Notes: generated by a model from the letters alone, not told the origin. A DNA stretch of 64,000 bases from Marsupella aquatica (GCA_973895155.1 OZ316898.1:746751-810750); one strand, 5' to 3'; shown: positions 1 to 56,510, counted from the first letter of the stretch. Made by a program: numbers and translations.

Positions 1-3000
1 ATCTCAACACATTTTGTTGAGGTCAAGAATCAATAGCTTCCGTCTGATCGGACCGTGAAGTGGAGGCAAGGGTCCTGCAAAGAAGGAACACCAATGTTAG
101 AATTGTGAGAGATAAAATAGAGGAATGTTCGAGATAATCTCAAGCATCACAAGTGAATGTACAACAGTCAACATCATACCTATTGTTGGTTGAAGATTAG
201 TAGTTGAAGAAATCTCAGGACATCTTCGGAGATTATTGTTGACGCACTCCACAACTGGTAAGGGCCCGCCTATTTCTGTGAAGATAGACATAATAATTTA
301 GACAACTGAATTTCAGGACTGTTCAAACTAACTTGGGTTTCAACCTCACGTGCTGAAAGACCCAAATTCATCTAGAAGGTTATCTCCTAGTTGGTTTTGG
401 ATGTCCAAATTTATCCCTTCGGGAAGGGTCTCAACAAGAGCTGGCTCAGACCAAAGTGGCACTAATTTGAACTTATCCTTCCTATACTTTCTAGATCAAA
501 TAATCTTCTCAGACTGCTCTATACTGACTTATTGACCTTTTGACAGTCCATCAGTCCAGACATAATGAGTAGCACTTGCTTTGAGTGATTTGTAACCAGT
601 TCTACCGATTTCAGTCCCCGGTTTCCTAACAAAAGGGAGAATTACAGGGCTTCCAATAGAAGAATCTGTGAGAACAAGCTTATTCTCTGAAGCGCAAAAC
701 ATTTGGTCCAAGGGAGAGGACGATGCACCTGCCTCGTCCTGAGGGGGAGTATGGCCCAGCGACTAGCTTTCTTAGTAGAGAGAATCTCATCCAGTTGAGG
801 AGGGCTTGGAATTGGTTGGCTAACTGCGTCCTGCAAGGTGGATTCCCAGCCAACATCCAAGGTTGAAGACTGTTGTTCACGTTGTGCGTCTCCAAGGCCA
901 CCCGATGAAGGAACACCTGGAAGGTCAAGATCATCTCGAGCATCATTTCCAAATTCAGGCAATATTTCACCCTCCTCTTCCATGTAGCTTGGGATTTTCA
1001 GGCCCTCCATTTTGCGATGCTCTAAATTCTTCGCAAATACTTCCTCAAAAACACTGGCTTCCACCGGAGCTATGTCTGAGGCAAGGCCCCAAAGGCCTTT
1101 GAAGGCCCCAAGGCCTTTGAAGGCCCCAAGGCTATTCAAAGGCAAGACTGTGAAGTCTTTGTCCCACTTCTCACTGTAGTTCCAAAACGCATAAAAGTCA
1201 TCAAAGAAAATTTGGGACCAGTCTGGTTCCTCTTCACAACAAATTCCCCCAAAGATGATTGAGTCTCGGGCTCCAATGAGAAAATCTCCCTCCTCCTTGG
1301 GCAGCTGATCACGGTAGTAGCTCCCGTACTCCAACTTTGTGTGGACTTTCTTCTCACGACGAATATTTTCAAAGACACTCTGAATCTGGCCTATCAATGG
1401 GCCTTGACGGAAAAAAAACATTACCAAGAGCTCCGTCGAGTTTGCCATCTGTAAACAATACTCCAGCAAGACAAAAATTTCGGCATTTGTCCACTGCCGT
1501 TGTCGAAGATGACCAAAATTGACAATGGAAAGTGGGCACGTCCTTTGCACCAAGTCAACAATCTCAGGCTTCATTGTCCTCATCAAATTATCGCTAAAAA
1601 ATGTGCGATAAGGAGTATCCTCCATTGAAGGCATCCTACCAAATACCTTGCAATATATCTGCTCAAGCCTAACAATGAGACTTTGCGGAAATGGGTCTTT
1701 TGGCCTATTTCTTTTTAGGAGGTTGGAAATCCAAACCTCTCCAGCAAGTTGTCTAAGTTTGGGCAACTCACCACGATCCATAAATGCAGACAAATATTGA
1801 GTTAGCTCAAACTAAGTGAGTGAATTGGCAAACCGATCCGGATACTTCAAGATGAAGTTCTCCACAATTTTTGCCCTCAACTTGGTCATGACTTTGAAAG
1901 TATGAGCCATATCACTCATTGATTGAACATCAGATTTGTTGTCTAGGTCTTTCTTCAATAAAACCTTCTGATGTTGAACGGCAGTAAAAACTTTCAGAAT
2001 GTTGTCACTACTCAGGTCTCCTTCAAAGCATCTAAACAATGTCGGCGTAATCATTTTGTTGTCCAGGATTTCCCGTTTATTTTTGAACCTAACTCCCCTA
2101 GACCATCTGGAAAGTCCCTTGACCCAATCGATGCACATTTGTCTCCAAGACTGGAAGAGGTTCTCTTCCAAAAAAAGCAACCAAAAAATATTCCTCAGAT
2201 CGGATTTTCCAGTCGTTATTTTGGCCAAGGCCATAAAATCTTGATCCAAACAGTACAAAGAAAATCTGAGGCTCGAGACGATCTCGAGGTAGAATTAAGG
2301 AACTATGTTGAAATTTATCGGAGAATACATGAAGATAAATCAAATACATAAACTTGACCTCGAGGCTTGAGAAAATCTCGAGCTAGAAGTGGATTTGAGT
2401 TTGAATATACCTGGAACTTTTGATGATCCGTTAGTCTATTGGACCCAATCACGGGTCTCTCTCGACGGCCACACTCGTCAAACTATCGACGGGCATGGAC
2501 CATAGTATCAAGAAAACAAGACTCATACTCCATGGTCTTATAACAGCATTTGCCCTTTGTGAGTGTTGAGCAAGTATTGTTCTTGGAGTTTTGTCCTAAA
2601 GAATTTGTGACTTTCGATACTGCAGACTCTTCGCGACCTCCTTCAACTTTGCATCGCTCTTAGCCCAACCTATGATCCAAATAACTGCCTTTGCCGAGTG
2701 TTGTCCACTAATTGCAAGGAACTGCACCTTCTTATTCTTAACACCCCACTCAAACTCCTTTCGATCCTCAGGAGTATTCTCATAATGGAGCAACTACGAA
2801 CTCTCTCTTGAATACGGAATTAAATCCGCCACAGCTGGTACCATTCCACGGTTTTTAACCATGGATTTCGCGACCTCCATGCCATGGTCTTTATTGAACA
2901 TCCTATATACCAATACTGCAAAAGGCGAATCTATACTAGTGACAGGTATGTCAAAAGTTTCATTCATGCCAAATATGTAATACTCCTCAGTCTCCTTAAG

Positions 3001-5067
3001 AACTTTGGCTCCTTCTTTAACGCTCTTTTCTCCCGGAGCATCTCCTGGAGTGCCGTCATCATCGGTATGTGCAATCACACCCGAGGAAGATGCCAAAATG
3101 AGATCTACATTGGGCGGTGTAGACTTTTTTGGCGGATGAGCCTTCTTCGCTTTGCTTTCGGGTTTGTCAACCCTCTTCCTCTTTTGAGACACCTTTGCTT
3201 CCTTTTTGTCCAAACCGGAGGTCTTGTCTCCTGCAGCTATGGATTTCACTTTACCTGTTTGTCTCCGATGAGACAACACCCACTTTTTACAAGCATCCTC
3301 GTCAAATTCTCCGGCTCCAAACACAAAATCAAGGGATATGGATTCAAACTCCCCCAATTTTGATTCCGACATTAGTCTCAAAACCTTCCACGTGAAAGGA
3401 GTCATGAATGCATCATCACGATCAAACCCATACTTTCAACAATAAAGTAATCCAAAAATTATGTCGGCTCCAGATATAGGACTATCTTCAAGCAAATTAC
3501 TTGCAGTAAAACCCTCGGGGAAGAACCCCATTGATATTACGCTCAATTGTTTCCTGGCTGCATGTTCAATGTTAAGATCGCAAGAGTAGTTTTTGGCGTG
3601 AAGCCTAATTAAAGCCCACTTCCCTGTCTCGTGGTTCTCCACCGTCAAAACCATGTCCTTACCGTTACTCGTCACAATAGAAACAACAGGCCCTAATAGG
3701 CTGCACACCAGAGGATCGACTGATGGAGACCTCGTCTTCACACAAATAATAGTTCCTTCCATGTCTTCAATTTCAGCAAGCTCAATGGCCCAACAGAATC
3801 CAAATTGACCTTGTCCAGGGCAGGAAACCTCAATTGCATGTTCATCTTGACTACCAAATTAGGCGATCCCAATTTCGCACCTGGTACAGCCAAAATGGTG
3901 CAATTGTCAGAAACATGTACCACAAAACCAAGAAACAAATAGGAGGCTCAAGATGATCTCGATCTTCCTTCATTATTAGGACAGCTGAGCCGACGGTTTG
4001 TGCATATGCACTGTAGTCTGACATGTTCCAATGCCACATCTCACCCGGGGAATTTGAAAAGAGATTTCAACCCCAAGAAATCTAAAAAGAGAACACAATA
4101 GTCAGGAACTACAAGAGGCTCGAGATGATCTCGAGCCACCATCTGTTTAAAAGAAAAATACAAGGGCTCAAGATGATCTTGATCCTCAGATATATCAGTT
4201 GAGGTTTTATTCCATTGCATACATAAATCAGTCAAAAATGATCCAATGTCACCTATTCGACCACATTCAAAACCCTCTAACTCAGTGGTTTGTCATCTTC
4301 AAAAACAAGTTGGAGGACTAAGAAAGTGGTCCACAAGGCAATGTTGGATCACATTGGATAGGATATTAGTAATTGGAGTAGACGACATGGAGTCCTTCCA
4401 ACTGGAAGAAATCGGTCAAGGGATACGAATGAACATAATGGAAGATGGTGATGAATATGTTTGGCTCGAGATGATCTCGAGCCTAACATCTCAAACGAGT
4501 GATCCAAATATTATATTCAACAATGAACATCATATTCAATCAATGATTAAAATCCACTTTCTCCATTGACTTCTCATACGCACAAACCCATTCGGATGTC
4601 AATGATCAGAACGAGTTGGAGGGTAGAGAAGTCCCTGGAGGAAGGAAATTTTAGATATTTTGGATATGATGTTCACTTTTGAATTATAAGAGCTTGAAGA
4701 AATCTGACTAGGTAACATGCAGGAAATGGATATTGGCTCGAGACGATCTCGAGCCTCATGCCACTTACATCAAATGCAAAATCACTTGATATCACAAACT
4801 TTTGAAGCAAAGTAATGCAGAAAACATCAATAGGCTCGAGATGATCTCGAGCCTCAACTGCATCTAAGGAATCCAGAAACAAGTGGACCAATTGAAGCTC
4901 GAGACAATCTCGAGTTAAACTTGAACAATGAACAAAGATGATGAATTACGTTTAATGGTGCGATGGATCTGATGCGCTGAGTCTAGATGGGTCTGAAGCT
5001 CATCCCCAACCGTTACAAGGTTGTACTCAACGAAGTCCTCCTTGGAGAAATCTACAATAGTCGACAT
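1..5067 (-). pseudogene. Transposon accessory gene, multi-exon and decayed, containing a ParB/Srx-like domain (~2410-2975)
   Basis: ORFs 2794-3405 and 2596-2793 are in frame, separated by a single TAG. ORFs 1812-2258 and 642-1793 are likewise in frame across one TAG. Motif order FDIPVTSI..R..EVAKSM..G...FLAISGQHS..A...ILAQHSQRAN fits the ParB N-terminal fold. GT donor at ~2410; probable ATG at 5067 (MSTIVDFSKEDF). Upstream exon structure uncertain. Confidence 0.6.
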
Positions 5068-5930
5068 GGCTGGTGAAGAGAGGAACGTACTACGGGCTGA
5101 GAACTTAAAAACAAATCTTGAGCCTAAACACAAAATCTTGACCCTATAAAATCTCGAGGAAAAAAAATAATCTCGACCCTCTAATATCTCGAGGCTAATA
5201 CAAGCATCTCGAGGCAAGAGCGCAAAAAAATCTAGAGGCAAGGGACGCGAGGAGACGAGGAGGCGAGGAGGCAAATGTGAAAATGGGGAGTTCAAAACCC
5301 TGAAGCCACTATAAGCCCCTCGGGGGTCGGCCTTGGCCGTGCCAAGCGTGCCACGGGCTCGTGCAGGCTCAAGTAGGCTGCCACGCAACCTGCTGGGTGC
5401 GTACAGTCATTATTACGGTCACACGTGTTGTCATTATTGTTATCCGTACTTCAGCTCTGCCACGAGTTTAGCCGTGCCACAAGTTCAACCAAGCCGTCTG
5501 ATTGGCCTTTTTGTCAGTCAGGATTTTATATATTGCTTCTCTTTGCTCTCCAGCGGGTCATTCTTCTCATTTCGTTTCATTGCTCGCTCGTTGCTCCCTT
5601 TGCCTCTCTCTACTCTCTCTCTCCCTCTCCCTCTCCCTCTCCCTCTCTTTGGCTCTAGATTTCTGCTCTGATCTTTTTCTATCGTTATTTTTAAGGGTTG
5701 TGGACTCTATGTTTGTGTTTAGGATATGTCGAGACATTATCATTTTAAGCTCTGAAGGAGGTCTAAAATAATTGAGCTCCTATCTTTTAGAAAACCAAAC
5801 CTTTTCAGCTTATACTAATGTCGGTCAAAATCCATTTGGAAGTCTTTTCCCTCTATTTGATGGCCTTTTAGAAGCTATTTCTCAGTAAACTGGGAGCTAC
5901 TTTCTTAATTGCACCAAATCATACCTCTAG
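5068..5930. promoter_or_regulatory. Probable bidirectional promoter/5' UTR region of the transposon
   Basis: Lies between the divergent genes. GC-rich core with repeated TGCCAC/GTGCCA boxes (5339-5480), a GA-rich tract on the left (5240-5275) and a CT microsatellite on the right (5604-5650), as expected for outward-facing plant 5' UTR pyrimidine tracts. Confidence 0.45.
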
Positions 5931-5947
5931 ATCATCTAGAGCCATTT

Positions 5948-6585
5948 GGCCTCATTCACAATTGGAGGACCCAAAAGGAACGTCGCACTCAAAAATGACC
6001 ATAGTTTATTATGTTTTAGGATATCATTTGTAGGGTGTAATGAGATGATATAGAAAATTTGATGTACTATACTTAATAAACATCCTGTAGGTTGGTAACA
6101 TTCATTAAACTATCTAGCATTTGAGACTTTGAAGCTTTCCTTATATGTCCTTCAAAGATTGATAAAAGGACTTGTCACGCAACGGGTCACATCCTTTCGG
6201 GACTCAGAAGGACTCTAAAAAATGCATTTTAGACAATGAAATTTTACCAAAGCATGAATACTAATAGAATAATCTTATATTTCAAAACTCAAATATTGAC
6301 ACACACTAAACCTTTATGTACAGGACAAAAATAATCAGTAATTTTGGCTTATTTAGGGCCATCAATAATAGGATCCCTTAAAACAGTTGAAAACTTGATT
6401 TATCTACATGGTGAGGTAGGTAACACCATGTAAAATAGTCTTGTGAAAAAATTAGACTTATATGTCTTGAGATAAAATCATGATGGTGCTTTTTCCATGT
6501 TACAAAAGTTATTTTTCACTAAAAAAGCATGTTTTTGAGTCCTGAATGTGGTTCCTGCGAGGTACACCCAATTGTGAATGAGGCC
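5948..6585 (+). mobile_element. MITE family A copy 1 (638 bp, 18-bp TIR, 4-bp TSD)
   Basis: Perfect TIR GGCCTCATTCACAATTGG...CCAATTGTGAATGAGGCC; TSD ATTT at 5944-5947 and 6586-6589; near-identical inverted copy at 53983-54620. Confidence 0.95.
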
Positions 6586-7040
6586 ATTTATATGTTCTTA
6601 TTTTGGGTGGCTTATTATTCATAATAGTATCTTTGTCAAATACAATTTCCTTTTTGGCTCGAGATCATCTCAAGTCATAAGTTTGATCCTCAAAATTATT
6701 AACTTTTGCTTTCTATCTAATCGTGCATTCGGTTGTCCTTGTTCTAATTGGGTTTGTAGATAGTCGAAGGTATAGAATCTGAATTCGCTATTTAGTGAGA
6801 TTTCATATTCTACCTCAAGATCATCTCGAGCTAGATACTTCTGAATTTTTACATATTGGTGTTTTTGTCCCTCTTCTACCTCAAGATCGTCTCGAGGTAG
6901 AAGAGTTTCTTATTTTCTCTATCACACAGTTTTTTGGGATAAACTTCTACACTTGGGTTTTTTGGTTTGTTTTTGTAGTCACTTTACCTCGAGATCATCT
7001 CGAGGTAACTACATCCAACGGTTTGGACCACGGTTTCAAA

Positions 7041-10000
7041 ATGGGGATTTTCTTTCGAGGGGACGAGCTTTGCCTCATAATCGACGGAGTAGAAGTTGCT
7101 TGCAGGACCGTCCTCAAGGTTGACCCGGGTGACTCAGTGCGTAATGTTGATTTGGGAAGTAATCGTATTGGAGTTCTCATTGAGAAGTGCTATGAGGGAT
7201 CATGGGAAATTCCTTACCCTTTGCCACCGATCAGGACCCTGTTTGATGCAGTTGACTCCTACATTATTTGGGATGCCTCTTTTGCATATTTGAAGTCACA
7301 ATCAACTCCAACGACAACACAAATGGATGCCTCTTGTTCTACAAAGGATACGGTTCCCGGTTTTGTACCAGACAAATCTTCGGTGGGAAGTTTGGGAGAC
7401 TCAATTATATCTGGCCATGAAGTCGAGCTCTGGATTGGCAATCAGATTGTGGCTTGTGGATTTGTATTCAAGACAAATCCCGATGAGACCTGTCACAATG
7501 AAAGACTTGGCACTTCTAGGATTAGTGTGAAAATATGTGAAGTTTTTCAAGGAAGGGAGAGGTTACCCTTTCCTCACGTTGGAGCCGATACCATTCAGGA
7601 AGCATTGGACACTTTTGTATTCTGGAATTTAAAGGATGTTACTCGGAGGAGTTCTTCCCAGGATATACTAAACGACCTGTCCACACGGGATGTTTTTGGA
7701 AATTATAATTTCAAGGATTATAGTTTGCGTTCTAATTGGATGACCGAGGAGGTGGAATTGTATGCTGAGGATAATCGCACCAAAGTGGGGGTTGGCATCA
7801 TCACAATGCCTTTCGAGTCAAGTGAAATTGATGATGAGGTTCTTGGGCCAGCTCACGTTGGGGTTGCAGTCACACGCGTGATTGACCCTCTATTTTTCCC
7901 AAATATCTCCCCAGGAGTGCCTGGTCTTGTTAGGTGGGCCGTCCGTTCACTTCTACTGATTCAAGGGGTATTTTTCTTCTGGATCTCATTGAAGAGGTTT
8001 CTCCGAAACCAATTATTGATGGTCGAGATCATCTAGAGGTAGATATGAAAGGTGACACTGAGTTTTCAAAGCGCCCGTATAATTTCATCAAGAGAACGAA
8101 GGTTAACCCAGATGAAAAAAGGAAGAAGCACTTGGAGTCTCAGGCAATACTGAAAATCACAGAGGAGGAAATTGACTCCATCCAAAGAGAAGGTTGTTGT
8201 AAGTTGAAGTGTTGCCTCAACATGCCGAGAGAAGACCTACAGGCGATAAGGAGGGAATACCATGGGATGTCAAGCGACAACAAAACCAGTCACATTCTCA
8301 CTCTTTTTGGCTGTAGGGAGAAGGAAGTGGTGACAAAAGGATATTTTGTTGTAAGAAGTAGACTTGTTTGCAAGGGTGCATTTATTAAAATGCATGGATT
8401 CAGCACTCCCAAGTATTATGATTACAAAAATCAATATGAAGCAGGTTGCACGGTTGGATTCCACGGAAACAAGGGTTCACACAAGACACGGGGAAGCACC
8501 TTGCACGCTCGTGCTTTGTTGGAGTCCATTCTAACCCAAAACGGAGAACCCATGCCGCATCTTCCCTATGGAGGGTCTCATGGTATTGACACGGTTGAGT
8601 ACAGACTTCCATCTTGTTTCACGAAGAAAGAGATTTTTGAGGAGGTATACTCAAAAATGGAATTAGATGGCTACGTGAAGGTGAGTGAAAACACTATGTA
8701 TAAACTCTGGAGTGAGTCCTTCATGAATTTTGACTTTCACAAGGGAAGTGCATTTGCAAAGTGTGCACTTTGCAGTGAGTTCAAAGATCAGTTGATGCGG
8801 GAGAAGAGAAAGAAAGAGCGTTTAGAGATTGAGGAAAGAAGAGCTCGCCATCTTCGTGAGCAAATGTCTAGGAGATATGTTTACTATGCTCATAGGTTTC
8901 TTGCGAAGAAGGATCCTGAGAACTATCTTTGCATTATACATGACAAGATGGACCAAGCCAAGACATGGATCCCTAGGTTGGTCCCCACTCCTAAATCATT
9001 GTCTGGTAGTGGTCAACCGCTCCCCATTGCGCTCACTGGGATGTTGACCCATAGAAGGGATCCCGGAGTGTATGCTCACTTCAGTTTCACTGGGCTTTGG
9101 CCGGGAGATGCAGACTTCACAGTGACATCATTGGCCAAGTGCCTTAGAGATCTGGAGGATTACAAGGGGGAAAAATCTGGAGACCTCCTTGAAGGATTAT
9201 ATTGGGCTGCAACGAGGCCAATTTTTCAATCTCTTTTGGACTTTGAAGCATTTCTCGCAAGTTACTTAGAACCCAAAAAAGTCTCAATTGCTAGATTTCA
9301 GGGAGCTGAAGATGACCAAGATCTTGGGTTATCAAATGTGGTGGATGACAACTTTGGTGTTGATCCCAAGGCTACGTCTACCTCTTTCAAACCATTGCCA
9401 AGGCACCTGACCTTGCAAATGGATAATTTAGGGAAAGATAACAAAAACCAGTACGTGATGGCATTTTGCAGTGAGCTTGTTAGTAGAGGGGTTTTTGAAA
9501 CAGTGCAGATGTCGTTTCTCATGGTTGGTCACACCCATGAGGATGTCGATGCATTGTTTTTGAAAGTATCCAACCAAGTGAAGTACAAGGAGGTTTCTAC
9601 CCTCTTGGGGTTGATGGCTGAGGTTTGGGAGTGTGAAAGCATTCATCCTGTCCCAGGTTGATCCAAGAGGTTGCAGCTTACAAAGAGTTTTTGAAAACTT
9701 TCAAGGTAAAAGACATAGAGGGCCACTCAAAACCAGTGGCATTTCTTTTCTCTATGAGAGATAATGTTCCAATATATCAATACAAAGCACATGTGAAACA
9801 ACCTTGGTACCCTCCAACCGGAAGGTCTATTTGGAGAACTGATTCCAACACCAATGCTCTCATTTTACCAGAAGGTCAACCGTTTGCAAAACCCATCTCC
9901 GGGGATGTACGAGGCAAGGTTGAAGAAATCATCCCATTCCTTAATCGTTACATTGAGTTTTTGAAGGAGAGTTGTAAGGATGAGACCTCTACAACATATC

Positions 10001-10750
10001 GTGAGCGGTTTCCTTTGGTGAAATATTGGGAGATGGTGGTGCAAGTATTATTTGGGGAGCTTACAATTGAAGGGGAGGCAGAAATATAGTTAGCATTGAC
10101 ATACGAGTTCTGGCCAAAAACCAACCACGAAACTGGTTACAAGGTTAATAGTACAGGAACCTCTGAACCATTGGGGGAGCCTAGTAGTAGTACACAAAAT
10201 CCAGAAATGGTGGAGCTTCAGAATGAGTACCTGGAAGAGATGGAGGATCAAGCTGCAACATTTGTTGGCGCTCGACACGAGCAAGAACTTGCACGTTGGA
10301 TTCCTCTGCAGGACATTCAAGAGGGTCACTTTATATTTCTCCGTCCAGAGGATGAATGGGAAAAGAAGAATGGGAAAGAACGTTTCTGGTTGGTGAGAGC
10401 TTTGGGTGTTGTGGACCAAACCATGAAGTTCCTTTGAACAGGAGATTTGCAATGCAATGAGAATTCTCCTACTAGTACACGGTATGCTCCTATGTTCCAA
10501 GTGCAATGGTGGAGGCCTAAACATGGTAAGCATGATGCACCGGATCATGTGTGATATTCACGTTGCCTTCAGACCACTAAGACTTGGGAGGTGGATCCTG
10601 GGTTTGACAGTGCCACTAAACGTTGGCAATTTGCTAATTCTGCTATGTATGGATTCAAGTCACGCTCTAGAGAATAAAATATAATTGATAGAGGTTTGAC
10701 CATTCCCAAGAATGTTTTGAAAACACTCAAAACTACATGGAAGGGATTGT
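7041..10750 (+). pseudogene. Sola-like DDE transposase with 3 N-terminal TNP1/En/Spm-like domains, CxxC/H zinc motif and C-terminal BAH/SH3-like segment; frameshifted
   Basis: ORFs 6795-8036, 7934-9661, 9658-10089 and 10096-10437 are joined by frameshifts (~7960, ~9655) and premature stops. Motifs: FAKCALC..H, LCIIHDKMDQ (D1), LQMDNLGKDNKN (D2), FLMVGHTHEDVDALF (D3). Three repeats of V(A/G)xG..LG...V.I...(LP.P)..W at the N-terminus. Confidence 0.8.
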
Positions 10751-10786
10751 TGAGTAAGTCAAATGTTTTTTAGTAGTCACTATGTC

Positions 10787-10918
10787 AAAGTGAGGGAGTC
10801 TATGTCAATTAGTTTGGAATTAGACATGTCAGAGTGAGGGAGTCTATGTCAATTAGTTTGGAATTAGACATGTTAGAGTGAGGGAGTCTATGTCAATTAG
10901 TTTGGAATCAGACATGTC
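10787..10918. repeat. 44-bp tandem repeat x3
   Basis: Unit AGAGTGAGGGAGTCTATGTCAATTAGTTTGGAATTAGACATGTC repeated three times just downstream of the transposase. Confidence 0.9.
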
Positions 10919-11460
10919 TTTAGTACTTACTGTTGGTTAGTACTAAGTAGTATATCTATTTAAGTAACTAATTATTATAATATTTTGGGATACTAGTTTG
11001 AATAGGTGGAGGTAATTGAACTTGGATACCTTTATAATTGCTTTAATTAATTATTATATCAATACAGACTATATATTACATGAAGTCTTAATATCCATGA
11101 TAGGATGTGACTGCCTCTTACTAGTAAACCTCAGTTTCAACTTGAGTTGCTTAGAATGTAACAAATTACTTGAATGTCTGAATGGATAGTAAGCCAGGTA
11201 TCATTCAAATTTAATATATTAAATGCTCTCAATTAGTAACTAAGTAGAAGGTTAATTTAGCTAGCTAAGGGTAGAGATCATATTGAAGCTTTACTAGTTA
11301 TATGGGTAGAGATCATATTGAAGCTTTACTAGACAGTTATATTCTATTAGTCAGATTGAATCAATGTAAGTAAGTTGAACTACTTCTTATCCAATATATT
11401 TTACATTATTATCACCCAAATGTTTTTCTTTAGAATCAAAATTAATATTTCATTTTCTCC

Positions 11461-11556
11461 TATGTACAATCTTGATCCCCCAAATGTACAACTCCCACTG
11501 CCCAAATGTACAATTCTTGTGCCCAGATATATATTTTTTGGTGCCTAAATGTCCAA
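11461..11556. repeat. Short ~22-bp-period repeats (CCCAAATGTACAA), probable subterminal repeats
   Basis: Four to five degenerate copies immediately before the sequence changes character at ~11600. Confidence 0.5.
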
Positions 11557-11599
11557 AGATCAAAGAATTTTCCAGTTTTAATGAATAGACTGATTGAGG

Positions 11600-13000
11600 T
11601 GTTCTATATTCCACCATAAAATGTTCACTTAATCTTTCTCAACGCCTAGTTCCCTACGTTCCAGTGATGCAACTTGTGGTGATTGTATTGCACAGTCAAT
11701 TGCCACTGGTAGGAGATTTGTTCCTTGATTGATGACAATTTTTGACCGGTTATTGGATCAATAGTGAACAACAATGATGTGGTCTAGTTTGACCAATACA
11801 ATTTTCAATTTAGATTAAGTGCTTGATATCGGGCTTGATATATCTTGTATTATTCAATGCCGATTACGTCTTAGAGTAGACTGCAATTGCTAGTCCATCT
11901 TGCTGCACCTGGATTCTTGTGCTCTAACTCCATAAAAAATCTTGTTGTTTTCCTATTGATGTTGATCATCAACAATATTTGCAATGATATATAGGTCTTC
12001 GGGTGGGGATGATGCAGTTATTATACACCCTATTGATGCAAGTTGTTTCTGCTAAGTTGCATCGCATTCCCAATCTCTGCCTCATTCCCTTCACATCATA
12101 GAATTTATTCCTTGCATATCCGCAAATCTGAAATGGCTCCCAAAGAAATATTACGATGACACTTGTTGAGTTGTTCCAGTATCTTATTATATTGAAACCC
12201 AGAGTAACTCCTTTCAGAATGAAGCGTCTGAGCCAACCACCATTGGCCCCTTGTAAAGTCAGGTCTGCTGCATGTCATCCACAAGGTAACACACAAGAAT
12301 TCTACCACTTCCACTCTCTGTTTACTCGTACATTGAGTTTTGAGGAACCCACTAGCTGTCAGATTCTTATTGAAATCCTTGAACTCTTTGTCCGACGTAC
12401 CGATGAAATTGGAAGTCAATCTTGATACTGCCTCCCTTCTTCAAGGAGAATGCCTCTGCCACCAAATGTGGGTGATTGTTCTTTCCGGATCCCAGCTCCC
12501 CACAAAAAATTGATCATCTCCCGCTCACCAATATCCTCTTCTAACCAGGGTAGTCTAGCAAAATTGGCCAGACCAGTCTCCTACATAAAATATGGATGCT
12601 TGTTCATCTGCAAAACTACAATTGCTTCTAAATTCTCCTTTGACCTTAACAGTTTCAATCAAACATTCTCTTGAACTGAGTTTCTCCATTTGTTCCAGTT
12701 GCAGTGCTAGAGGGTCAAAGTCCCAAGATTGTCTTCAAATTTGGGTCCATCATCATACACTTCCTAGCTACTTCCTCGATCAGGACCAGGTTTGGCTTGC
12801 TTTGGTGTCCTTTTGTGACCTCAAGAGCCTTGTCCATGTCCTCCTTCCATTGAATCTCATCCCTTCTTCTTTGGTGGCTCTACTCCCAATGCATTATCAG
12901 CTATTTGTTTCTTTGATTGAGCCTCAATGTCTGCTTTCCGTTTGGCAAGAGCCTTTTGAGTTGTAACTGTTCTCATTGGACGATCCAAATCTTCTCCGTC
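11600..13000 (-). pseudogene. Highly decayed ORF, possibly a retrotransposon accessory (antisense) ORF
   Basis: Stop-ridden but protein-like minus frames (ETGLANFARLPWLEEDIGEREMINFL; HPHLVAEAFSLKKGG), followed by a Glu/Gln-rich coiled-coil-like stretch. No catalytic motif seen. Confidence 0.25.
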
Positions 13001-13390
13001 TAATACCTTCTTGTTTCAAATATACACACTACAATATACGTAAAAACTTTAATGATTTTTCTCTTTGTATTTTTGAGTGCATTGATTTTCCATACAACCC
13101 CTCAATTCTGTGGAGGAGGGCGTTTTGTGAAGCACCATAAATGTAGGAAAGGTAAAACCCAGCTATAGTGTTACCATATAAACCACCAAAATAAAATGTT
13201 TCAATGAGTTTTGTGCCCCCAATGCATTGCCATTTCATTAGACTAAGTTTTATAGTTTTTTCTTCTAAACTAAGTTTCTCTAGATTTGTTTTTGGCAAGG
13301 AATACTGCAAATTCAAATGACGACCACTTTTTAAAAAGGCACAGCCCTTTATCATAGTTCTTGATAGCCCTGCCCATGCATTGCACAAAA

Positions 13391-13790
13391 GATGTTGAGG
13401 TGAGGAAAAGATGTTGAAGAGAGAAAGTTGTTGAGGTGACGAAAAAATGTCAAGGTGAAAAAATGATAATTATTAAGGTGAGGAAATTGTGTCAATGAGA
13501 GAAAAATATGTCAAGGAGAAAAATACGTGAAAATGAGAAAATGATGTTGAGTAAAAGATGTCAAGGAGAGTAAGAGAAAAGATATCAAGGTGAGAAATTG
13601 ATGTTGAAGAGAGAAAAGGTGTAAAGGAGAGGAAAGATGTTGAGGGAAGAAAACCATGTCAATGTGAGAAAATGACATTGAGGTGAGGAAAAGATGTCAA
13701 GGAGAGAAAAAATATCGAAATGAGAAAAAATGTTGAGGAGATAAAACGATGTCGAGATGAGAAAAATATGTAAGGCAAATAAAACTCTCA
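13391..13790. repeat. Degenerate purine-rich ~18-19-bp tandem array
   Basis: About 20 units of consensus GATGT(T/C)(G/A)AGG(T/A)GAG(G/A)AAAA. Confidence 0.8.
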
Positions 13791-15773: not shown

Positions 15774-18700
15774 CTAAGATTTGTCCACACTTGAGAAAAT
15801 GGGAGGGTCCTCAATGAGTTTACACTCGCTAGCCTGCGAAATCAGGCTCCGAGAATCGAGATGTTTTCTTGGGGAGGCTTCCAAAAGAATCGGGACCACA
15901 TCGCGCATGGAAGGGCGGTTGGAAGGTAAGAAACTGGTGCACAGAAGACCTACTTTGAGCACAAGCATCATGCTCTCCTGCGCCGAGGCCCTTATCTGCG
16001 GGTCCAAAATTCCCACAGCTCCAGCTTTGGTCTCGATCTTCTTGGAGACCCACTTGACGATATCCTGATCTCCAAACTCAGGCTCGATCGGCTTCTTCCC
16101 AGTCACCAGCTCCAATAGAACGACCCCAAAGCTGTAGATGTCAGCCTTCTCCGACACTTTCAAAGTGTAGCCATATTCTGGGGCAATGTAGCCGTAAGAT
16201 CCAGCAACAGCGGACATGGATTTCTCCACGAAGGGCTTCGCTAGGCCGAAGTCACCCAGATGGGCCTCGAAGTCGAGATCCAATAGAATATTATTCGACT
16301 TCACATCTCGGTGAACAATGGGAGGCATGCAATCATGGTGCAAGTACGCCAGACCCTCAGCAGCTCCCATTGCGATTTTGTAGCGAGTGTCCCAGCCCAA
16401 TACGGAAGCGCATTTACTGTTGTGGATGTAGTCTCCGAGAGAACCATTCTGCATGTATTCGTAGACGAGGACGTTGGACTCATAATTCCAACAACAACAG
16501 AGAAGTTTCACAATATTCCGATGCCTGATTTTCCCAAGAGTGTCGACCTCCGCAACGAAACCGTTGTCGAATCGAGCCTCAAGTTTTTTCACGGCTACCG
16601 ACTGCCCATTGCTCAAGTCCACCTTGTAGACCTTTCCGGACCCACCACTGCCTATCAAACAATCCTCGTGCAACTTTTCCATCACCTCCTCCTGAAGAAA
16701 GTTTACCTTCTGGAACGACCTCAGGCTCCAAGTTAAGTCTTGATGATTTCGCCGATTCTTCCAGTAGTACAGTCTAACATAGTACCGTCTCCAGAGACAG
16801 CAAGCTCCCGCGAAGAGGATCACTGCGACAGCAGTGAACGAAGCTCCAATAGCCCACGCCAAGGAGGCGTTGTTAGATTTAGGATTGCTAGTGCTTGTCA
16901 CTGGAACACTACAAAGACTTCCGTCGTTGTTGCACAAATTTAAACCAGGGTTGCCTATAAAGCTAGAGGGGAGCAAACTGAGGTTGAACGGAGGAGGCAG
17001 CGGGCCTGTGAGGTTGTTGTACGAAAAATTATATTCCGTGAGCTGGAGTTTCCCAAGCTGAGGAGGGAGGGCTCCGGAAAGGTCATTATAAGAGAGATCG
17101 AGAGTATTGAGGGACGGCAAGTCACCGAGTTGCCAAGGAATCTCACCGCCGAAGTGGTTGTTGGACAGGTTCAGCTTATCCAATCTGAGGCACTCGGTAA
17201 TTTCGACGGGAATCGACCCATTAAACGAGTTCAGTCCTAGATCTAGAGTAGACAACCATTGCAGCCTCCCGAGCTCTGTGGGAAGGTTCCCTTCCAGACC
17301 GTTCGATGATGCCCAAAGCTCTGTCAGGTTAGGAATGTTCCCAATCACAGAAGGTATCAACCCGGAGAACTGATTCCCTTCGAGATGCAGCGCTTCCAGT
17401 GCCAATGCGCTGCCAATGCTCGACCCGATACTCCCACTGAGAAGATTGTTGGAAAGAGACAAGTACACCAACCCCGGAGAACCCCATAAGCCGTCAGGAA
17501 GGGGGCCGGTGAATCGGTTGTTTTCCAGACGCAACTTCTGAAGGGTGGTGCAACTTCCAAGGCCGATGGGGATCGGGCCAGACAAATGGTTCTGCAGAAC
17601 GAACATCCACAATGAAGTTAACATCACAAGCATGGCGAGGTACACGAACACGAGAAGAAGGCAAATGTTTCTCGTCCCTGCACACGTAGGCACTCCACGA
17701 CGGGAATACAGTCGGGGATGGAAGACAGATCTCCACAGGGTACTTGAAAGACGGGTAGCGGGAACCAATTAAGAAATGGAGAAACTTCAAAAGAGCCAAC
17801 TTGAAATCTACGGCATGGTAAGACTTGAAAAAAAGCCAGAAAGTGTGCAGTATTATGGCAAAACAGCAGGATGAGTGGAATACAACCCCTACTAGCCCGT
17901 GTGGAGAACAGCGCTTCAACAATTTCACGAATAGAATGCAAACAAGAAAAAGCCGGCAGTGAGACAGCGAGAACGTAGGACGATGTGTGAGGAAAATCCA
18001 AATCAGAGAGTTTGTAGTGTTTACCTCAAAGAGATTCAGAAAAGTGAGATTTCCTTTGTCGCAGAGACCGAGAGGTATCGGCCCATCTAGTTGATTCGTT
18101 GAGAGATCGAGATTTTCTAAAACCGTAAACTTTCCCAGGTTCTGAGGAACTTGACCCGTGAGACGATTGCTGAATAATTTGAAGCAAGAAAGGTTAGGAA
18201 GATCACCGAAAGCCTGAGGAATGCTCCCGGTGAGGCCGTTTGTGAATGCCTGAAAGAGAGACAAACTATGAATGAAGGAAAGCCCCTCAGGGATAGGTCC
18301 ATCCAGTTGATTGAGGGACACATCGAACAATACCAGGGAAGTGAGGTTCCCGGCAGAAGAGGGGATTTGCCCGGTCAGATTATTTTGCCAGAGTAGAAAG
18401 TCTTGAAGCTCTGGGAAGTACATGAGTTGGTCTGGTATGGTACCTGTGAGAGCGTTCCGACTCAAGTCTAGGGATTGTAAACGTTTCAGCTCACCCAGCT
18501 CAGGCGGAATCGATCCCTGGAGATCGTTTCCGGTGAGGTACAGTCTTGTGAGATTGGTATTCCGCAAAGAAGGTGGGATCTGACCGGTCAGTTGACACCA
18601 CGTCAGGGTTAGAGTTTCCAGATGAGTGAGATTTCCCAACTGTGGAGGAATGCTGTCACTGAAACTGTTAGCGTCCAGCACTAATTCCACGAGGCTGCTA

Positions 18701-26142: not shown

Positions 26143-28562
26143 TGTTAGGATTTACTTTTAGGTCTAGAGTAACGACTGTACCATAGTTAGGGCTAACCTT
26201 AGTCGCAAACTAGGTTAGGTTAGTCATGTTGTGCACACTCTATACCCAAGCGGTGTTTGCTTGGAGAGAAGGAACTCAGGCTCATTGTTACGGAGCCAAT
26301 TGAGAGATAGGGAGAGCCTGTGCCGTGGACGCTTGGTATGGCTGGTGGGTCTAGAGTACAGTAAAGCTCTTGTGTGTTCCCATGGACGTAGCCTCATGTG
26401 GCAGTGAATCACATATCTCTCGGTGTCAACTCTTGTGCGTTGGATGGTTCATAGGCTTGCCATTGCAATTGTCATCTATGCTCAACGATTGGTATCAGAG
26501 CATGCCTGGGAGGTGACAAGGTTTTTTCGTGATGGTTTTTACAACGTTGAGTGTCGGTGTTGCATTCAGAGTTTTGTCGCATGAAACTCGAATGTGTGTG
26601 GCTGAGCAGATAGATTAGTGAGAGGGCTCTCTATTGGTATATAGAACTCACTCGTTGGTATCCGTGGTGTGGAGGAATCGGAGTTTGTGTTGATCAGGAG
26701 TTTTTCATGTTCGATGGTATTTTTGTGGGAGAGACCAGAGTTTGTTTTTGCAACGGTGTGAGCTATGCGGTGCGGGAGGCGTCGCATGTTATAGATCAAG
26801 TTGAAGATTAAGGCAAGTTGGTTATTTTGGTAGCTGAGTTGCTGCCGAGTGTTTACTGAGTGTGTTGCAACGAGTGAAATTGACATTCAGATGTTTTTCA
26901 CAGGCTATGGTGCTTGTTCCCATCTGAACTAGGTTTCTTGTTGTCACATCCGATGCAAAGGAAGAAACGCAAAGTGCTAGGGCTCAACAGAGAGATCGTG
27001 GCGAAGCGGTCGTTTTGAGTCCGGGATTGGCACTTGATGAGGAGAGAGCGAGACACGACGGAAGTATTTTCTCTGTTGAGCTTGCATACTGTGCCAGTGC
27101 AATTTGACAATATTTTCTGTCGGCGGTCAACACTTTTCTCATTTCAATCGGGAGCGGCAAGGTGTGTAATTTGGCCAACTTTTGTTCTTTTAGGGAAATT
27201 TTGCTTTTAAGGGGGGATTTAGGGCACTTTTGGTGTGTGTATACACACCACACACCCCCGGCCAGCCCCATACCCCCATCGTTCCCCTTGCGTACCCCTT
27301 CCCGAGTACATAGCCCCAATTGCAGCTTAGCCGGACCACGCAGCGCCGGTTGGCACAACGTACACCCCCCATGGCCGGCCCGACCTTGTCCCAACCTATT
27401 AGGTATTTACTCAAGGTCTAGGTTACGACATGTAACCATAGTTAGACTAACCGTAGTCGGAGACATGGTTAGGTTAACTAGGATGCAAACTATATGCCAA
27501 GCGGTGTTTGCTTGGATAAGTGGAACTTAGGCTCGTTGTTATGGGGGCCACTTGAGAGATGAGGAGAGCTTACACTGTGGAGACTTGGTATGGCCGACGG
27601 GCTTAGAGTTTAGTAAAGTTCTCTTGTGTGTTCCCGTGGACGTAGCCTCGAGGAGGTGAACCATGTATCTCTTGTGTCGACTACTTGCGCGTTGGATGTG
27701 TCATGTGCTTACCGTTGCGATTGTCATCTATGCTCAGCACAACCTCCCGCCGGTAGCCACCCCCTTCGCAAGCCTTGACAATGGCATTCGACCCCCGGCC
27801 CGGCCTTCGACATACGCGGCTACGTACGCAGCCACTTGTACTCCCGCCCGTACCCCCTCATGCCCCCATTACGGCCCTGTATGCCCCCGGCCCGGACCCT
27901 GATACACCGTTTTTTTGAAAGAAGCCTTAAACCCCTTTAAGGGCCAGTTTTTGTTTTTTCCCCGATTCTTTTCTATTGGTTGTCCTGGGCCCGGTCACGC
28001 ACCATTTTAACCGCTTGGACAAGGGGAACGGCCCCTGTGAGCCTTGTTGTACTACGCGGGGAATATTCCATAAAATAGAGAGCATGTTTTTGGCCGTTAG
28101 TAAAAATTCTGAGGTCCAAATGATAACTTTGTTGGATCTTTTTTGGCAAGGACGTAGCCACTAAAGTTAGCAAAGCGGCGCACCAATTGAATCGTGATTC
28201 CAACGACAAGTTGTACTTGGCATTTCAGTTATTTCCTGAAGTGGTCAAAATGGGGGAGTTTCCCAAGGTTTTACCCACCCCAACCAAAATTTGAATAACT
28301 TTTTTGTTGGATTTTGGTTTCAATTTTGGTTTTCAGTGTTGGGCTCCTAGCTTTGTGGTCTATGCGGTGGTGATTAGTTTTGAGTTTTTTGGGAAGTTGC
28401 AAAAAACAACATTTTTTGTGATTTCTCATATCAATCAAATTGCTCCTTTGAATCACCTCCACATGAGGCTACGTCCACGGGAACACACGTATCTCTCCGT
28501 GTTGATACTTGTGTGTTGATGGTTCATGGGCTTGCCGTTGCAATTATCGTCTATGCTCAACA
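26143..28562 (+). mobile_element. Coding-less derivative of the Copia family: 5' LTR (26143-26487), PBS, long leader, truncated 3' LTR
   Basis: LTR similar to 51032/58166 LTRs; PBS TGGTATCAGAGC (tRNA-iMet) at 26490. Internal part is colinear with the reverse complement of ~56550-58160. Ends in CTATGCTCAACA at 28562; no gag-pol. Confidence 0.85.
27397..27739 (+). mobile_element. Solo LTR of the same Copia family nested in the leader
   Basis: TA(TG-mutated)TTAGG...CTCAGCA flanked by 5-bp TSD CAACC (27392-27396, 27740-27744). Confidence 0.9.
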
Positions 28563-50555: not shown

Positions 50556-51582
50556 AAATACATTATTATATGAATTCTTTGTATTTACAAAAAATCAAAA
50601 TTAAAGTAAATAAAAAGGTTACTGTCAATAAAAGTTTCATCTCTTCCTTTGTATTTTTGTTATTCTTACGCTTAGGGTTTACCGCATGGCGACCCAAAAT
50701 TTATACAAAAATGGTCACAAACACAATTTGGGAGGTTATTTCTCTTCACATAACCGTCATGTCGTGTTTGTCGTCGTCCTAGCTTGCTGACATGACACAT
50801 TGTGGTGCTAGGAATTTTGCAAAGGACCTTGGGCTAATTGGGGTCCGTAATCATTGGGACCCAAAATCTGAGTAAGTGATTAATTTATTGGGCAAAAAAA
50901 TCATTGCTACAGTACGATAATTATCATGGAAACATTGACAGAAGGACAGGTGGATGGGAGCCTCAATCCTCTGCAGAGCTGGGATCACAAGAAGTGCAGG
51001 GTCTTAAGTTCTTCACAAAGGGTGGGATTATTGTTGAGCATAGACGACAATCGCAATTGCAAGCCCATGAACCATCCAATGCACAAAAGTCGACATGGAG
51101 AGATATGTGGTTCACCTCCACAGGAACACACAAGAGCTTTAGGGTTTAGGGTTTAGGACCGGCCATACCAATCCACAGCGCAAGCTCTCCCTATCTCTCA
51201 ACTAGCTCCGTAACAATGAGCCTTCGTTCCTCGAGGGTCTGGCACCAGCCCTGGCTATATACACAACAGCACTACCGCTAACATTAGCTAAGTCCTAACC
51301 CAAGTTAGCCTAACTGTGGTTAGCTCATGAGTCACAAGACTAAGAGCAATACCTAACAAACTCCCCCTTGACTCTTGTCTTGGGGATTGGACTAATTGCT
51401 ACCATATATGGAATCCTCAACGGGAAGTTCTAGACAATCACCTAAACAGGTTTCCCCCTAAAAACCATAAGGGTTAACTAAGGGTTAACTAGAATTAAGC
51501 CGTAGCCAAACTGGAATGAGTAATCCATATACAAATAGTCACACATTGCTAAATAACTCTACTTGAGCTATAACTGCAAAAC

Positions 51583-54500: not shown

Positions 54501-56510
54501 GTACATCAAATTTTCTATATCATCTCATTACACCCTAAAAATGATATCCTAAAGCATAATAAACTATGGTCATTTTTGAGTGTGACGTTCCTTTTGGGTC
54601 CTCCAATTGTGAATGAGGCCACCGCCGTTATCCGATCAAAGATATCTCACCTTATTTCCAGTCTGATTCTCAACTTGGGCTTTCTACTCCTTAAAAGTGG
54701 CAAAAACATCAGACTTATTGTGTAGAAAGTATATCCACACATACCTTGAGTAATCGTCTATGAACGTGACATAGTATAACCGTCCAGAATGTGAGGGAGT
54801 AGGGGCTAGACCTCACACATCACTATGTACATACTCAAGTACTTGATTGCTAGTGTGAGTTCCAACTTTGAAGGGTTTCCTGTGCTCCTTCCCAAGCACA
54901 CAATGTTCATAGAATTCCAACTTACAAGATTGCAAATTAGAAAGTAATCTTTTTTTCTGAAGAATAACCAAACCTTTTTCATTCATGTGGCCCAAACTAA
55001 AGTGCCACAGCCGGACCGTCTCCTCATGAGATAAGGTTACATTGGCTTCATCACAGACTACACTGCCCTCCAAAACATATAGATTTTTATGTCTCTTTCC
55101 CTTCAATACAACTTTAGTACCAGTTGAAACCTGAAGGACACCATTAGCAAAACTCCATCGATGGCCATTTGCTTCTAAAACTCCAAGTGAAATGAGATTT
55201 TTCATCATGCTGGGAATATGTCTCACATTCCTCAACGTTCTCACAACACTATCAAACATCTAAAATCTAACAGATTCAAGTCCAACAACTTGACATGGGA
55301 TTCTATTACCCATCAACATTGAACCGTTGGATGCCATGTAAGAACTGAAAAAATCTCTCATAGAGCAAATGTGAAAAGTACATGCACTATCTAGAATCCA
55401 GTCATCACTACCTGGATTTGACACTACGTTGAGAGCATAACCTTGGCATCACAATATGTCATCATCATCGAGAAAATCTACCTCATGCAAGCTCAATGCT
55501 GCGTTAGCTGATGCAGTAGGGTCCTTTACTCAACAATCCCTTTTCATGTGGCCAGACTTGCCACATCTCCAACATGCAAGAGGCTTCCTCTCTTGCGATT
55601 TCCCTCTGGATTTAGATCTCCTCCGTGATGTAGATCTAAACCTCTGGATTTAGAATTCGTACGTTGCTCTGCTCTTCCCCGGTTCACGTTCAGCGCAGTG
55701 CCAGAAGAAGATGTTGTTTGTGCTTGACCCAACTTTTCTGAGCATCATCAGACAGTAATGAGCTCACCACCTCATTATACGAAATGGACTTTAGATCTCT
55801 ATACAAGAGTGCCTATTTCAAGCCCTGATAAGATGACGGTAAGGAGTTTAGCAGAAGCAAGGCCTAGCCTTATTCTCATCTTCAACTCCCTTACCCAGGT
55901 TTGACAGATTCACCGCTAGATTGTCAAACTCATCCATGTGATCATGCAGCTTGCTCCCTTCCTTGAGCCTGAGGCTTATCAAGAGAGACTTCTTGTACAA
56001 CCGGTCTGACGCATCTTCCCGGTAGTACTTCTCTCTTAGAGCCTTGAATAGTGACGCGCAATCCGCATAATCATCCAACTTTTTGATGATGTGCGGCTTG
56101 AGATAAGCATCACTGCATTGACAGCAATCACCTGCTCCTGTCTCCACTGCTTCTTTGAAATCTCTTCTTCTCCATCATACTGCTCTCGCAAAGAGAGTAG
56201 ATGAGCTAAGCCCATGGCCCATAGAATACCCTTCACTTGCTTTTCCCACAGCAAGTAGTCAGTACGACCATCGTACTTCTCCACCTCAAACTTCACTCCT
56301 CCAAATCTAGCCATCTCCCTCTTCTTCCCCACTACCGACAGCTCTGGTAGTAGAACAGCTTCCTCCACTGCACGCCGCACCGATGATCGTATCGGTGATA
56401 CTTGTTCCTCTTCAAACGGTAGCAGTTCCTCCTCAGACTCTCTGTTTGATCATCGCGATCCTGAAGCTCCACCAACGCCAATTCTTGTAGTATCCTCTAA
56501 GTCACTCATA
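51583..56510 (-). pseudogene. Copia gag-pol, multiple stops/frameshifts and a MITE insertion
   Basis: KFEVEKYDG..LW (gag), CWRCGKSGHMKRDC knuckle, WILDSACTFH (protease), LWH..LGHM / EYVHSDV / TPQQNGVSERLN (integrase), QMDVVTAFL, YGLKQAPR, LYVDDMLI (RT), GYVDSDY, IEAEY, KHIDIRYHFIR (RNase H). Confidence 0.95.
53983..54620 (-). mobile_element. MITE family A copy 2 inside the Copia integrase
   Basis: Same 18-bp TIR and 638-bp length as 5948-6585, inverted; TSD ACCG at 53979-53982 and 54621-54624. Confidence 0.95.

Follow-up and report, generated by a model that had tools for sequence, protein, structure and literature searches.

Which protein, if any, reads the inverted repeats that a transposon carries along its own non-coding DNA? 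The question is raised by a stretch of 64,000 nt from Marsupella aquatica (GCA_973895155.1 OZ316898.1:746751-810750, one strand), referred to here as the window, the first kilobases of which hold a transposon that encodes a ParB-like protein beside its transposase and that bears an array of short palindromes. A reading of the sequence alone, the sequence-only reading below, had proposed that protein and array form a self-recognition module resembling bacterial ParB and its parS sites. The element is a dead, high-copy member of a bryophyte (liverwort-type) family of cut-and-paste DNA transposons of the DUF7869 type, and its palindromes are, with a probability of roughly 0.5, sites for a dimeric protein encoded by the element itself, most probably the ParB-like one, which would serve the recognition and control of the element's own copies.

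Three genes make up the element: a transposase gene on the plus strand; head-to-head with it, on the minus strand, an accessory gene in which a ParB-like part is fused to a methylase-fold part; and, downstream of this fusion gene, a gene for a NIF/FCP1-like protein, which the sequence-only reading had missed. The family is present at high copy number in two organisms, as seen in contigs from public runs, through which the other copies were compared and their differences described individually. The first ~25 codons of the NIF-like gene sit at the left edge of the window, and the element therefore extends past that edge.

The palindrome array

The palindrome CTCGAGAnnnTCTCGAG occurs seven times in exact form in the window, always between 2272 and 7004, and not once in 100 dinucleotide-preserving shuffles of the window, which provided the expectation for the motif counts. 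When up to three mismatches are allowed the matches rise to 19, against 1.9 expected (6 in the richest shuffle), and 18 of these lie inside 128–8038; the remaining one, a weak match with three mismatches, is placed at 51602. The half-site ATCTCGAG follows the same distribution, with 18 of its 19 occurrences in 1–8100. The earlier count of about 17 copies, and the claim that the other ~56 kb hold no full copy, are both borne out by these figures. The palindrome proposed as a 17-bp unit is real, although the true unit is longer, a dyad of 21–23 bp with its flanks (GGCTCGAGAT-N-ATCTCGAGCC, with outer TACC...GGTA on the transposase side), and one copy, at 128, stands to the left of 924, where the start of the element had been set.

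The positions of the sites with respect to the genes are given in Table 1. Homology-supported coding DNA, which covers 6193 of 10674 nt (58% of the first 10.7 kb), holds none of the 18 palindromes. The assignment of the palindromes to introns and untranslated regions of both genes stands in this respect, but it fails for the copies at 924 and 8022, which are found in poorly conserved in-frame linkers and not in introns.

A comparison with other copies of the family clarified the origin of the imperfect sites. These copies read C or G at 2368, 2373, 4170, 4180 and 6672; at four of the five positions (2368, 4170, 4180 and 6672) the change restores CTCGAG from CpG-to-TpG/CpA changes, while 2373 belongs to the central spacer. 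With C or G in other copies wherever CTCGAG has decayed, the imperfect sites of the window copy are therefore formerly perfect ones that have decayed through CpG-to-TpG/CpA changes, the pattern to be expected in DNA that is methylated and silenced.

Two further features of the sites could be seen. The unpaired central base tends to be C in the sense strand of the gene that holds it (of the nine accessory-side copies five have G on the plus strand, and of the six transposase-side copies five have C, with the copy at 924 as a further exception), an orientation that could stem from an inverted duplication of the region or from a transcription-linked bias. Contigs of other copies join distant palindromes within 2200–8100 (for example 2305 to 4113, 4752 to 6985 and 4847 to 5216), and such contigs stem either from deletion derivatives whose breakpoints fall at palindromes or from misassembly at the repeats. 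The idea that the palindromes are micro-exons bearing splice sites, some of them ending in GAG/GTA, was dropped, the palindromes of other lineages being without such ends.

The ParB/Srx-like domain of the accessory protein

The accessory gene runs on the minus strand from 5067 down to 349, and its main conserved blocks were placed by tblastn with relatives. The ParB-like motif order noticed in the sequence-only reading is present at 3093–2453 (-) and is conserved in relatives. The gene is a pseudogene in the window, with in-frame stops at about 3433, 2794, 2599 and 1812. Two of them fall in the ParB-like domain (2794–2796 and 2599–2601), and the former is specific to the window copy, G being the letter at 2796 in other copies. 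When 1.8 billion representatives were searched with the largest open piece of the gene (642–1793), 27 matches were obtained. A search for homologs of the 203-aa ParB piece among proteins of 112–355 aa gave no match, and a metagenome scan for more ParB-like loci gave a single 1.2-kb contig (L007).

Because sequence methods gave no ParB match, intact relatives were fetched and folded. The AlphaFold2 (AF2) model of the ParB domain was obtained from an 8-row alignment (A2) of relatives, the modelled protein being the intact relative P0031 and not the broken window copy. Its core (residues 30–170) shows a predicted local distance difference test score (pLDDT) of about 80–90, save one 10-residue block near residue 59. 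In the Foldseek search with this model about 40 of the top rows are Noc, ParB, Srx, KorB, PadC or SbnI (best E 2.4e-3, probability 1.00). In VIA-align 2 the model is closest to PadC (Z 8.7), followed by KorB (8.1), SerK (7.5), pNOB8 ParB-N (7.4), Srx (6.6), SbnI (6.4) and Atu1540 (5.7), and then by SspE, BrxU, Osa and Spo0J; the top eight all belong to the ParB/Srx superfamily (Z 8.7–5.4), with unrelated chains placed near Z 2.5. The ParB/Srx-type fold suspected from the motif order was thus matched on the intact relative, not on the window copy itself, and on this medium-confidence model of relatives the accessory protein is accepted as carrying a predicted ParB/Srx fold.

A closer inspection of the strand-helix position where ParB proteins hold the GERR box, assigned by eye, showed S-G-Q-H-S without exception in the window as well as in every relative. 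The GERR box being replaced, and no ParB helix-turn-helix (HTH) domain being confidently matched, the analogy with a cytidine triphosphate (CTP)-dependent clamp that loads at parS and spreads finds no support.

A methylase fold lacking the catalytic tetrapeptide

According to the models, the accessory protein continues into a DNA-methylase fold of the beta class, which the sequence-only reading had not seen. The ParB-like and methylase parts are one protein: they form a single reading frame in L002, in L003 and L004 the two are linked across a single intron, and in contigs of relatives the ParB-like open reading frame (ORF) stands directly upstream of the methylase part, again in the same frame in L002. 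An intron with the family's own palindromes follows the ParB-like exon directly in the window, L003, L004 and L009. The region between the two parts reaches ESM Atlas scores of no more than 0.80, too low for use, and the conserved N-terminal domain of the protein has no Pfam match.

The assignment of the methylase part is based on profiles and on structure comparison. Against Pfam N6_N4_Mtase (PF01555) the relative P0009 scores 29.2 bits (cut-off 26.7) and the others remain below the cut-off, while the family profile matches M.RsrI at E 3.5e-7. The AF2 model of this part aligns with CcrM over 226 residues (Z 16.4) and with ten other beta-class amino-methyltransferases at Z 13.7–15.2, including M.BceJIV, MboIIA, EcoP15I Mod, RsrI, PvuII and the rotifer N4CMT, and the fold shows the circularly permuted order of the beta class. 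Motif I (FxGxG), which binds S-adenosylmethionine (SAM), appears as D-F-F-S-G-G in L001–L006 and P0011; the window copy has lost the corresponding segment, which would stand between 1152 and 735. The catalytic motif IV, (D/N/S)PP(Y/F/W), was found nowhere in any relative, and no DPPY-like motif was found in the window copy. The strand expected to hold it ends in a conserved V-D-F-x-R, with N-F-G-H in the window. Because the catalytic tetrapeptide is absent the protein was not filed as an active methyltransferase, and it is probably a methylase fold but not a conventional methyltransferase.

A comparable loss is seen in the third gene. The NIF-like gene lies downstream of the ParB-methylase gene in five relatives (L002–L006; Pfam NIF, E 1e-16 to 1e-19), and their proteins (alignment A5) have an invariant D-x-N where the family has D-x-D-x-T. 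In the window the minus-strand translation ..RRKLLILDLNKM.. matches, by eye and over ~25 codons, the invariant KLL-x-LD-x-N start of these proteins. Judging from these residues, the NIF-like protein may be a phosphatase that traps its substrate or is inactive, kept by the transposon as conserved cargo. The NIF-like proteins of L002–L006 also share a Cys-rich C-terminal tail.

Related elements and their own palindromes

The order of the ParB-like/methylase gene followed by the NIF-like gene is found in L002–L006, and the layout is kept wherever a contig covers it. The Riccia sorocarpa locus L009 (GCA_046195345.1) repeats the layout of the window, with the NIF-like gene and an 805-aa ParB-methylase gene on one strand and the DUF7869 transposase facing them. 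The sequence-only reading had asked whether related families with diverged ParB-like proteins carry different palindromes, and related elements do carry different palindromes in comparable places (Table 1), each of them CpG-containing and far above chance. Nine related loci, Riccia sorocarpa among them, have an array in which a palindrome of their own is repeated. What they have in common is the design: perfect dyads of 12–27 bp in the shared upstream region, in the leaders, in the intron after the ParB-like exon and in the spacer before the NIF gene. The outer dyad bases are shared by the closest ParB-like proteins, GGCTCG..CGAGCC by the window and L005, GTTTCAC..GTGAAAC by L002, L003 and L004. 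The recurrence of the palindrome design, and not of its sequence, is taken as the main evidence of function.

The lineage comparison bears on two explanations in which no protein of the element is involved. In one of them the element would have recruited a transcription factor or chromatin protein of the host, for which the palindromes are sites with a promoter or enhancer role, in keeping with their clustering around the divergent promoter region and the leaders and with the CpG that all of them contain. The motif is, however, essentially absent from the remaining 56 kb of the window, which is host DNA, and from the 9 kb past the last copy in L009, and a different sequence in each lineage would need a different host factor each time, which renders this explanation very improbable.

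In the other explanation there is no dedicated protein partner at all: the palindromes would be rapidly evolving repeats, hairpin or tandem, whose spread through the element's non-coding DNA goes by local duplication, and they might act as sources of hairpin or small RNA or as recombination hot spots. Local duplication is evident, since copies spaced by 98 nt at 4717–4856 are 81% alike, and the arrays show periods of 47 (L003), 27–28 (L009) and 35 bp (L011); the joints between palindromes and the orientation kept by the central base on each gene's sense strand also speak for it. Outside the duplicated stretches, however, the flanks are unrelated and only the 17–23 bp core is kept. The sites are perfect in the family consensus, as indicated by the C or G of other copies at the decayed positions, and the same design, with perfect dyads in each case, is found in lineages whose proteins are 27–55% identical. 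Stems of 8–11 bp with loops of 1–3 nt are, moreover, poor Dicer substrates. Repeats without a reader are thus considered rather unlikely.

Beside the Riccia copy in L008 (4300–5080) a separate, dense array was seen, in which the perfect 14-bp palindrome AGACTCTAGAGTCT occurs 23 times, in 12 cases as part of a 16-bp dyad, at spacing steps of about 21, 41 or 63 bp. This array may belong to another palindrome-bearing element.

The probable reader of the palindromes

With the enrichment and confinement of the motif, the two folds, the conserved gene order, the lineage-specific palindromes and the CpG decay as the observed ground, we infer that the palindromes are protein-binding sites, and likewise the identity of their reader and the effect of its binding. 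The family-specific, CpG-containing palindromes that fill the shared upstream region, the leaders and the introns would be the predicted binding sites. An element-encoded dimeric protein, most probably the ParB-like fusion, would dock on them, and through this docking the element would recognise its own copies and govern their transcription or their chromatin state, by way of anti-silencing or self-marking. Both accessory enzymes have lost their canonical catalytic residues and every palindrome has a CpG, which together suggest, by inference only, binding roles and an interplay with host CG methylation.

The second candidate encoded by the element is the transposase. The gene is identified by the Pfam family DUF7869 (E 4.8e-35; 121 bits, cut-off 26) and by tblastn with P0038, P0046, P0050 and P0044; BLASTP gives 54% identity to P0038 in an alignment spanning both ORF pieces, and the homologs of the transposase are named DUF7869 proteins of Riccia sorocarpa. 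In the window copy the frame is broken near 7960, by a 1-nt deletion, and again near 9660 and 10090; the break near 7960 is a frameshift and not an intron, because other copies have an extra A after 7960. Upstream of the core the protein has about 300 residues of uncharacterised N-terminal repeats, DUF8039-like, through which it could read the palindromes as internal binding or autoregulatory sites similar to the subterminal TnpA motifs of En/Spm, leaving the ParB-like protein to do something else. No similarity was found between transposase and accessory protein, so no shared DNA-binding domain is seen.

The placement of the arrays upstream of the transposase gene in the window, L008, L009, L010 and L011 agrees with the transposase as reader, as does the fact that the palindromes co-vary as much with the transposase as with the ParB-like gene. 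Arrays are, on the other hand, also present in the ParB-methylase gene's own introns, at a conserved place, and the published algal inverted-repeat arrays go with the ParB-like gene across different transposase superfamilies. The shape of the sites is a further argument, in that perfect dyads with a 1–3 nt centre suit a dimeric binder of the ParB/KorB type better, whereas typical sites of eukaryotic transposases are subterminal and often direct. Reading by the transposase is therefore considered unlikely, although the data do not separate the two proteins, because both genes co-evolve on one element.

Several points weigh against the ParB-like fusion as the reader. The co-evolution of ParB-like protein and transposase means that lineage-specific palindromes cannot tell the two apart, and non-coding DNA differs between diverged families anyway, so that only the recurrence of palindromic arrays is informative and not their differing sequence. 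In the short sequence available from L001 and L006 no clear palindrome is seen; a direct 22-nt repeat and a single 10-bp palindrome were all that was found. Pfam ParBc has no match at E up to 10, either for the window pieces or for the intact relative, and phmmer and profile searches of the PDB sequences gave no ParB match but only spurious ones (fimbrial subunits, IST1). The mean pLDDT of the P0031 model, which was built on an alignment of 8 rows, is as low as 67.6. No HTH was matched with confidence, as the structural matches cover the N-domain only (model residues 36–180) and the pLDDT falls below 50 after residue 180. Finally, the window copy cannot work, with several stops, frame breaks, a lost SAM-binding segment and N-F-G-H in the position of V-D-F-x-R.

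A more elaborate form of the ParB-like reading, speculative and of low probability, joins all accessory functions in a three-part kit with which land-plant transposons would recognise themselves and counter silencing. In this scenario the ParB-like reader would be coupled to a methylase fold that has lost catalysis and binds SAM or flips bases, and to a substrate-trapping partner, similar to phosphatases of the C-terminal domain (CTD) of RNA polymerase II, that holds this polymerase at the element; together they would shield the promoters of the element from host CG methylation, the module moving between superfamilies while its sites re-evolve.

Other features of the window

The coordinates of the features are collected in Table 1. 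The leader of the transposase gene is interrupted by a nested insertion that resembles a miniature inverted-repeat transposable element (MITE); contigs of other family copies show the empty site through a joint from 5940 to 6583, with seven shared letters at the joint. The left end of the element lies outside the window, and its right end was not located. No terminal inverted repeats or target-site duplications were found in a comparison of two Riccia copies 94–97% alike, one of which is interrupted by an assembly gap while the other extends past the end of the locus.

Downstream of the transposase gene there are three 44-bp tandem units (10782–10918) and about eleven 19-bp units (13387–13783) with a ATGTCAAGGTGAG-like core, which may be subterminal repeats of the DUF7869-type element or of another. 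To the right of the element, the closest apparent host gene is an intronless ORF of 664 aa for a leucine-rich repeat (LRR) receptor-like kinase (15774–17768, minus strand), which shows the genome to be a plant's. Farther along, 26246–28562 and 51031–58511 share several inverted or direct repeat pairs (45–273 nt, 70–96% alike), which indicate further copies of an unrelated repeat family.

Table 1. Features of the element in the window and palindromes of related loci
Locus	Feature	Position or copies	Strand	Basis or remark
Window	NIF/FCP1-like phosphatase-like gene, first codons	1-75	-	rest beyond left edge
Window	palindrome, 2 mismatches	128-144		between accessory gene end and NIF-like gene start
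Window	accessory protein, C-terminal tail	349-735	-	two in-frame stops; tblastn with P0001 residues 773-901, E 3e-23
Window	palindrome, 2 mismatches	924-940		inside low-complexity linker of accessory reading frame
Window	helical region and N-terminal half of predicted beta-class DNA-methylase fold	1152-2243	-	tblastn with P0001, P0011, P0017, E 1e-42 to 1e-73
Window	predicted intron (144 nt) after ParB-like exon	2267-2410	-	GT...AG boundaries on minus strand; two palindromes
Window	two palindromes	2272-2288, 2366-2382		intron after ParB-like exon
Window	ParB/Srx-like domain	2453-3093	-	tblastn with P0030 residues 265-456, E 2e-27; alignment A2
Window	conserved N-terminal domain	3436-3846	-	tblastn to L005 381-734, E 1e-12
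Window	putative large first intron (1.07 kb)	3881-4950	-	splice sites read from sequence; seven palindromes
Window	seven palindromes	3947, 4119, 4167, 4465, 4737, 4835, 4898		large first intron of accessory gene; all with one and the same central base in sense strand of gene
Window	putative first coding exon	4951-5067	-	ATG at 5067-5065, GT donor at 4950; read from sequence, no homology confirmation
Window	seven direct half-sites (ATCTYGAS)	5115-5238	+	just upstream of accessory gene start; add to array
Window	five palindromes	5925, 6658, 6814, 6880, 6988		5925-7004, non-coding leader upstream of transposase ATG
Window	nested 642-bp insertion, MITE-like	5941-6582		directly after palindrome 5925-5941; 95% inverted copy at 53983-54621, 47 kb off
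Window	transposase gene, DUF8039-like N-terminal part and DUF7869 core	7041 to about 10674	+	Pfam, tblastn, BLASTP
Window	palindrome, 2 mismatches	8022-8038		variable linker of transposase frame; 6-residue gap there in alignment to P0038
L003	TTCACGCGCnnnGCGCGTGAA	6 copies		three before ATG, three in intron after ParB-like exon; 47-bp spacing
L005	CTCGCRAAWTTYGCGAG	6 copies		upstream
L004, L002	GTTTCACAC-type dyads	2 or more (L004), 1 (L002)		upstream; in L004 also intron after ParB-like exon
L009	GGGACGCGTCCC	35 copies		all in 659-13675, none in 9.2 kb beyond
L008	GGGACGCGTCCC	18 copies		6959-12452
L010, L011	two further dyads	3 copies each (imperfect in L010)		upstream of transposase

Comparison with known systems

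The VANC proteins of the Arabidopsis VANDAL transposons are a functional parallel: encoded by the transposon, they bind short motifs that form arrays in the family's own non-coding DNA, they diverge between families in step with these motifs, and their effect, loss of DNA methylation, has been shown experimentally. VANC is, however, unrelated in sequence and fold and its motifs are short and not dyad-symmetric, and the function of the window family is a proposal from sequence and models. A structural parallel is offered by KorB and its OB sites (plasmid RK2), ParB and parS, and Noc and NBS, in which dyad sites of 13–16 bp are scattered over the replicon, many of them near promoters, and KorB regulates the transcription of its own element. 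The N-terminal ParB/Srx fold and the scattered dyad-symmetric sites are alike, and 8qa8, 7bm8 and 7ol9, structures of this group, are among the matches; these bacterial proteins possess a GERR box and a defined HTH and act as CTP-dependent clamps, whereas the window family has S-G-Q-H-S and a methylase-fold fusion and would act on chromatin. If the fusion protein reads the palindromes, transposons of early land plants would carry a portable, re-programmable protein-DNA pair that tells self from non-self, a logic established so far for VANDAL/VANC of eudicots alone and put forward, though never tested, for algae. The various lineages with different palindromes would then be a ready-made system for specificity swaps, and could yield orthogonal DNA-binding parts.

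Fusions of a ParB-type module to an amino-methyltransferase are known from phages and bacteria, and ParB-HTH-Dam fusions of prokaryotic or phage origin have been described in chlorophytes and chytrids (Iyer et al. 2016, PMC4738411). These eukaryotic fusions are of the Dam/DpnM type (group 2) with an intact catalytic motif, whereas the protein described here is of the CcrM/RsrI type (PF01555) and the tetrapeptide is absent.

The closest cases are algal transposons, for which the idea of self-recognition was already published in 2025, in red and brown algae; no paper on land plants was found in the literature. In the giant DNA transposon Sola1-1_Ec32 of Ectocarpus (Genome Biol 2025, PMC12477816) the opposite-strand gene encodes a ParB-like domain together with an N4C/N6A-type methyltransferase domain, and the authors propose that this protein binds and modifies its own element. 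The divergent arrangement of a ParB-like, methylase-type gene and a transposase gene is the same as in the window; the host is, in contrast, a brown alga, and the paper reports no palindrome array, NIF-like gene or DPPY loss. In the Plavaka elements of Bostrychia moritziana (bioRxiv 10.1101/2025.02.11.637652) the protein PAG3 has an N-terminal ParB-like domain, tandem inverted-repeat arrays stand beside its gene across families, and self-binding of the transposon was proposed, with accessory genes moving between transposon superfamilies. PAG3 resembles the protein of the window in its ParB-like accessory nature and in the inverted-repeat arrays at its gene, and differs in the host (a red alga), the effector (a 2-oxoglutarate-dependent oxygenase), the EnSpm/Plavaka transposase and the presence of the methylase in a separate gene, PAG2. 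The anatomy of a ParB-like accessory gene beside a transposase gene, with inverted-repeat arrays at the accessory gene, found in the window and in the related loci, agrees with these published descriptions. Three details go beyond them: the methylase part lacks DPPY, a NIF-like partner bears D-x-N, and the arrays keep a conserved place in an intron. The loss of catalytic motifs in both accessory "enzymes" points to binding rather than enzymatic roles, unlike what the algal papers assume.

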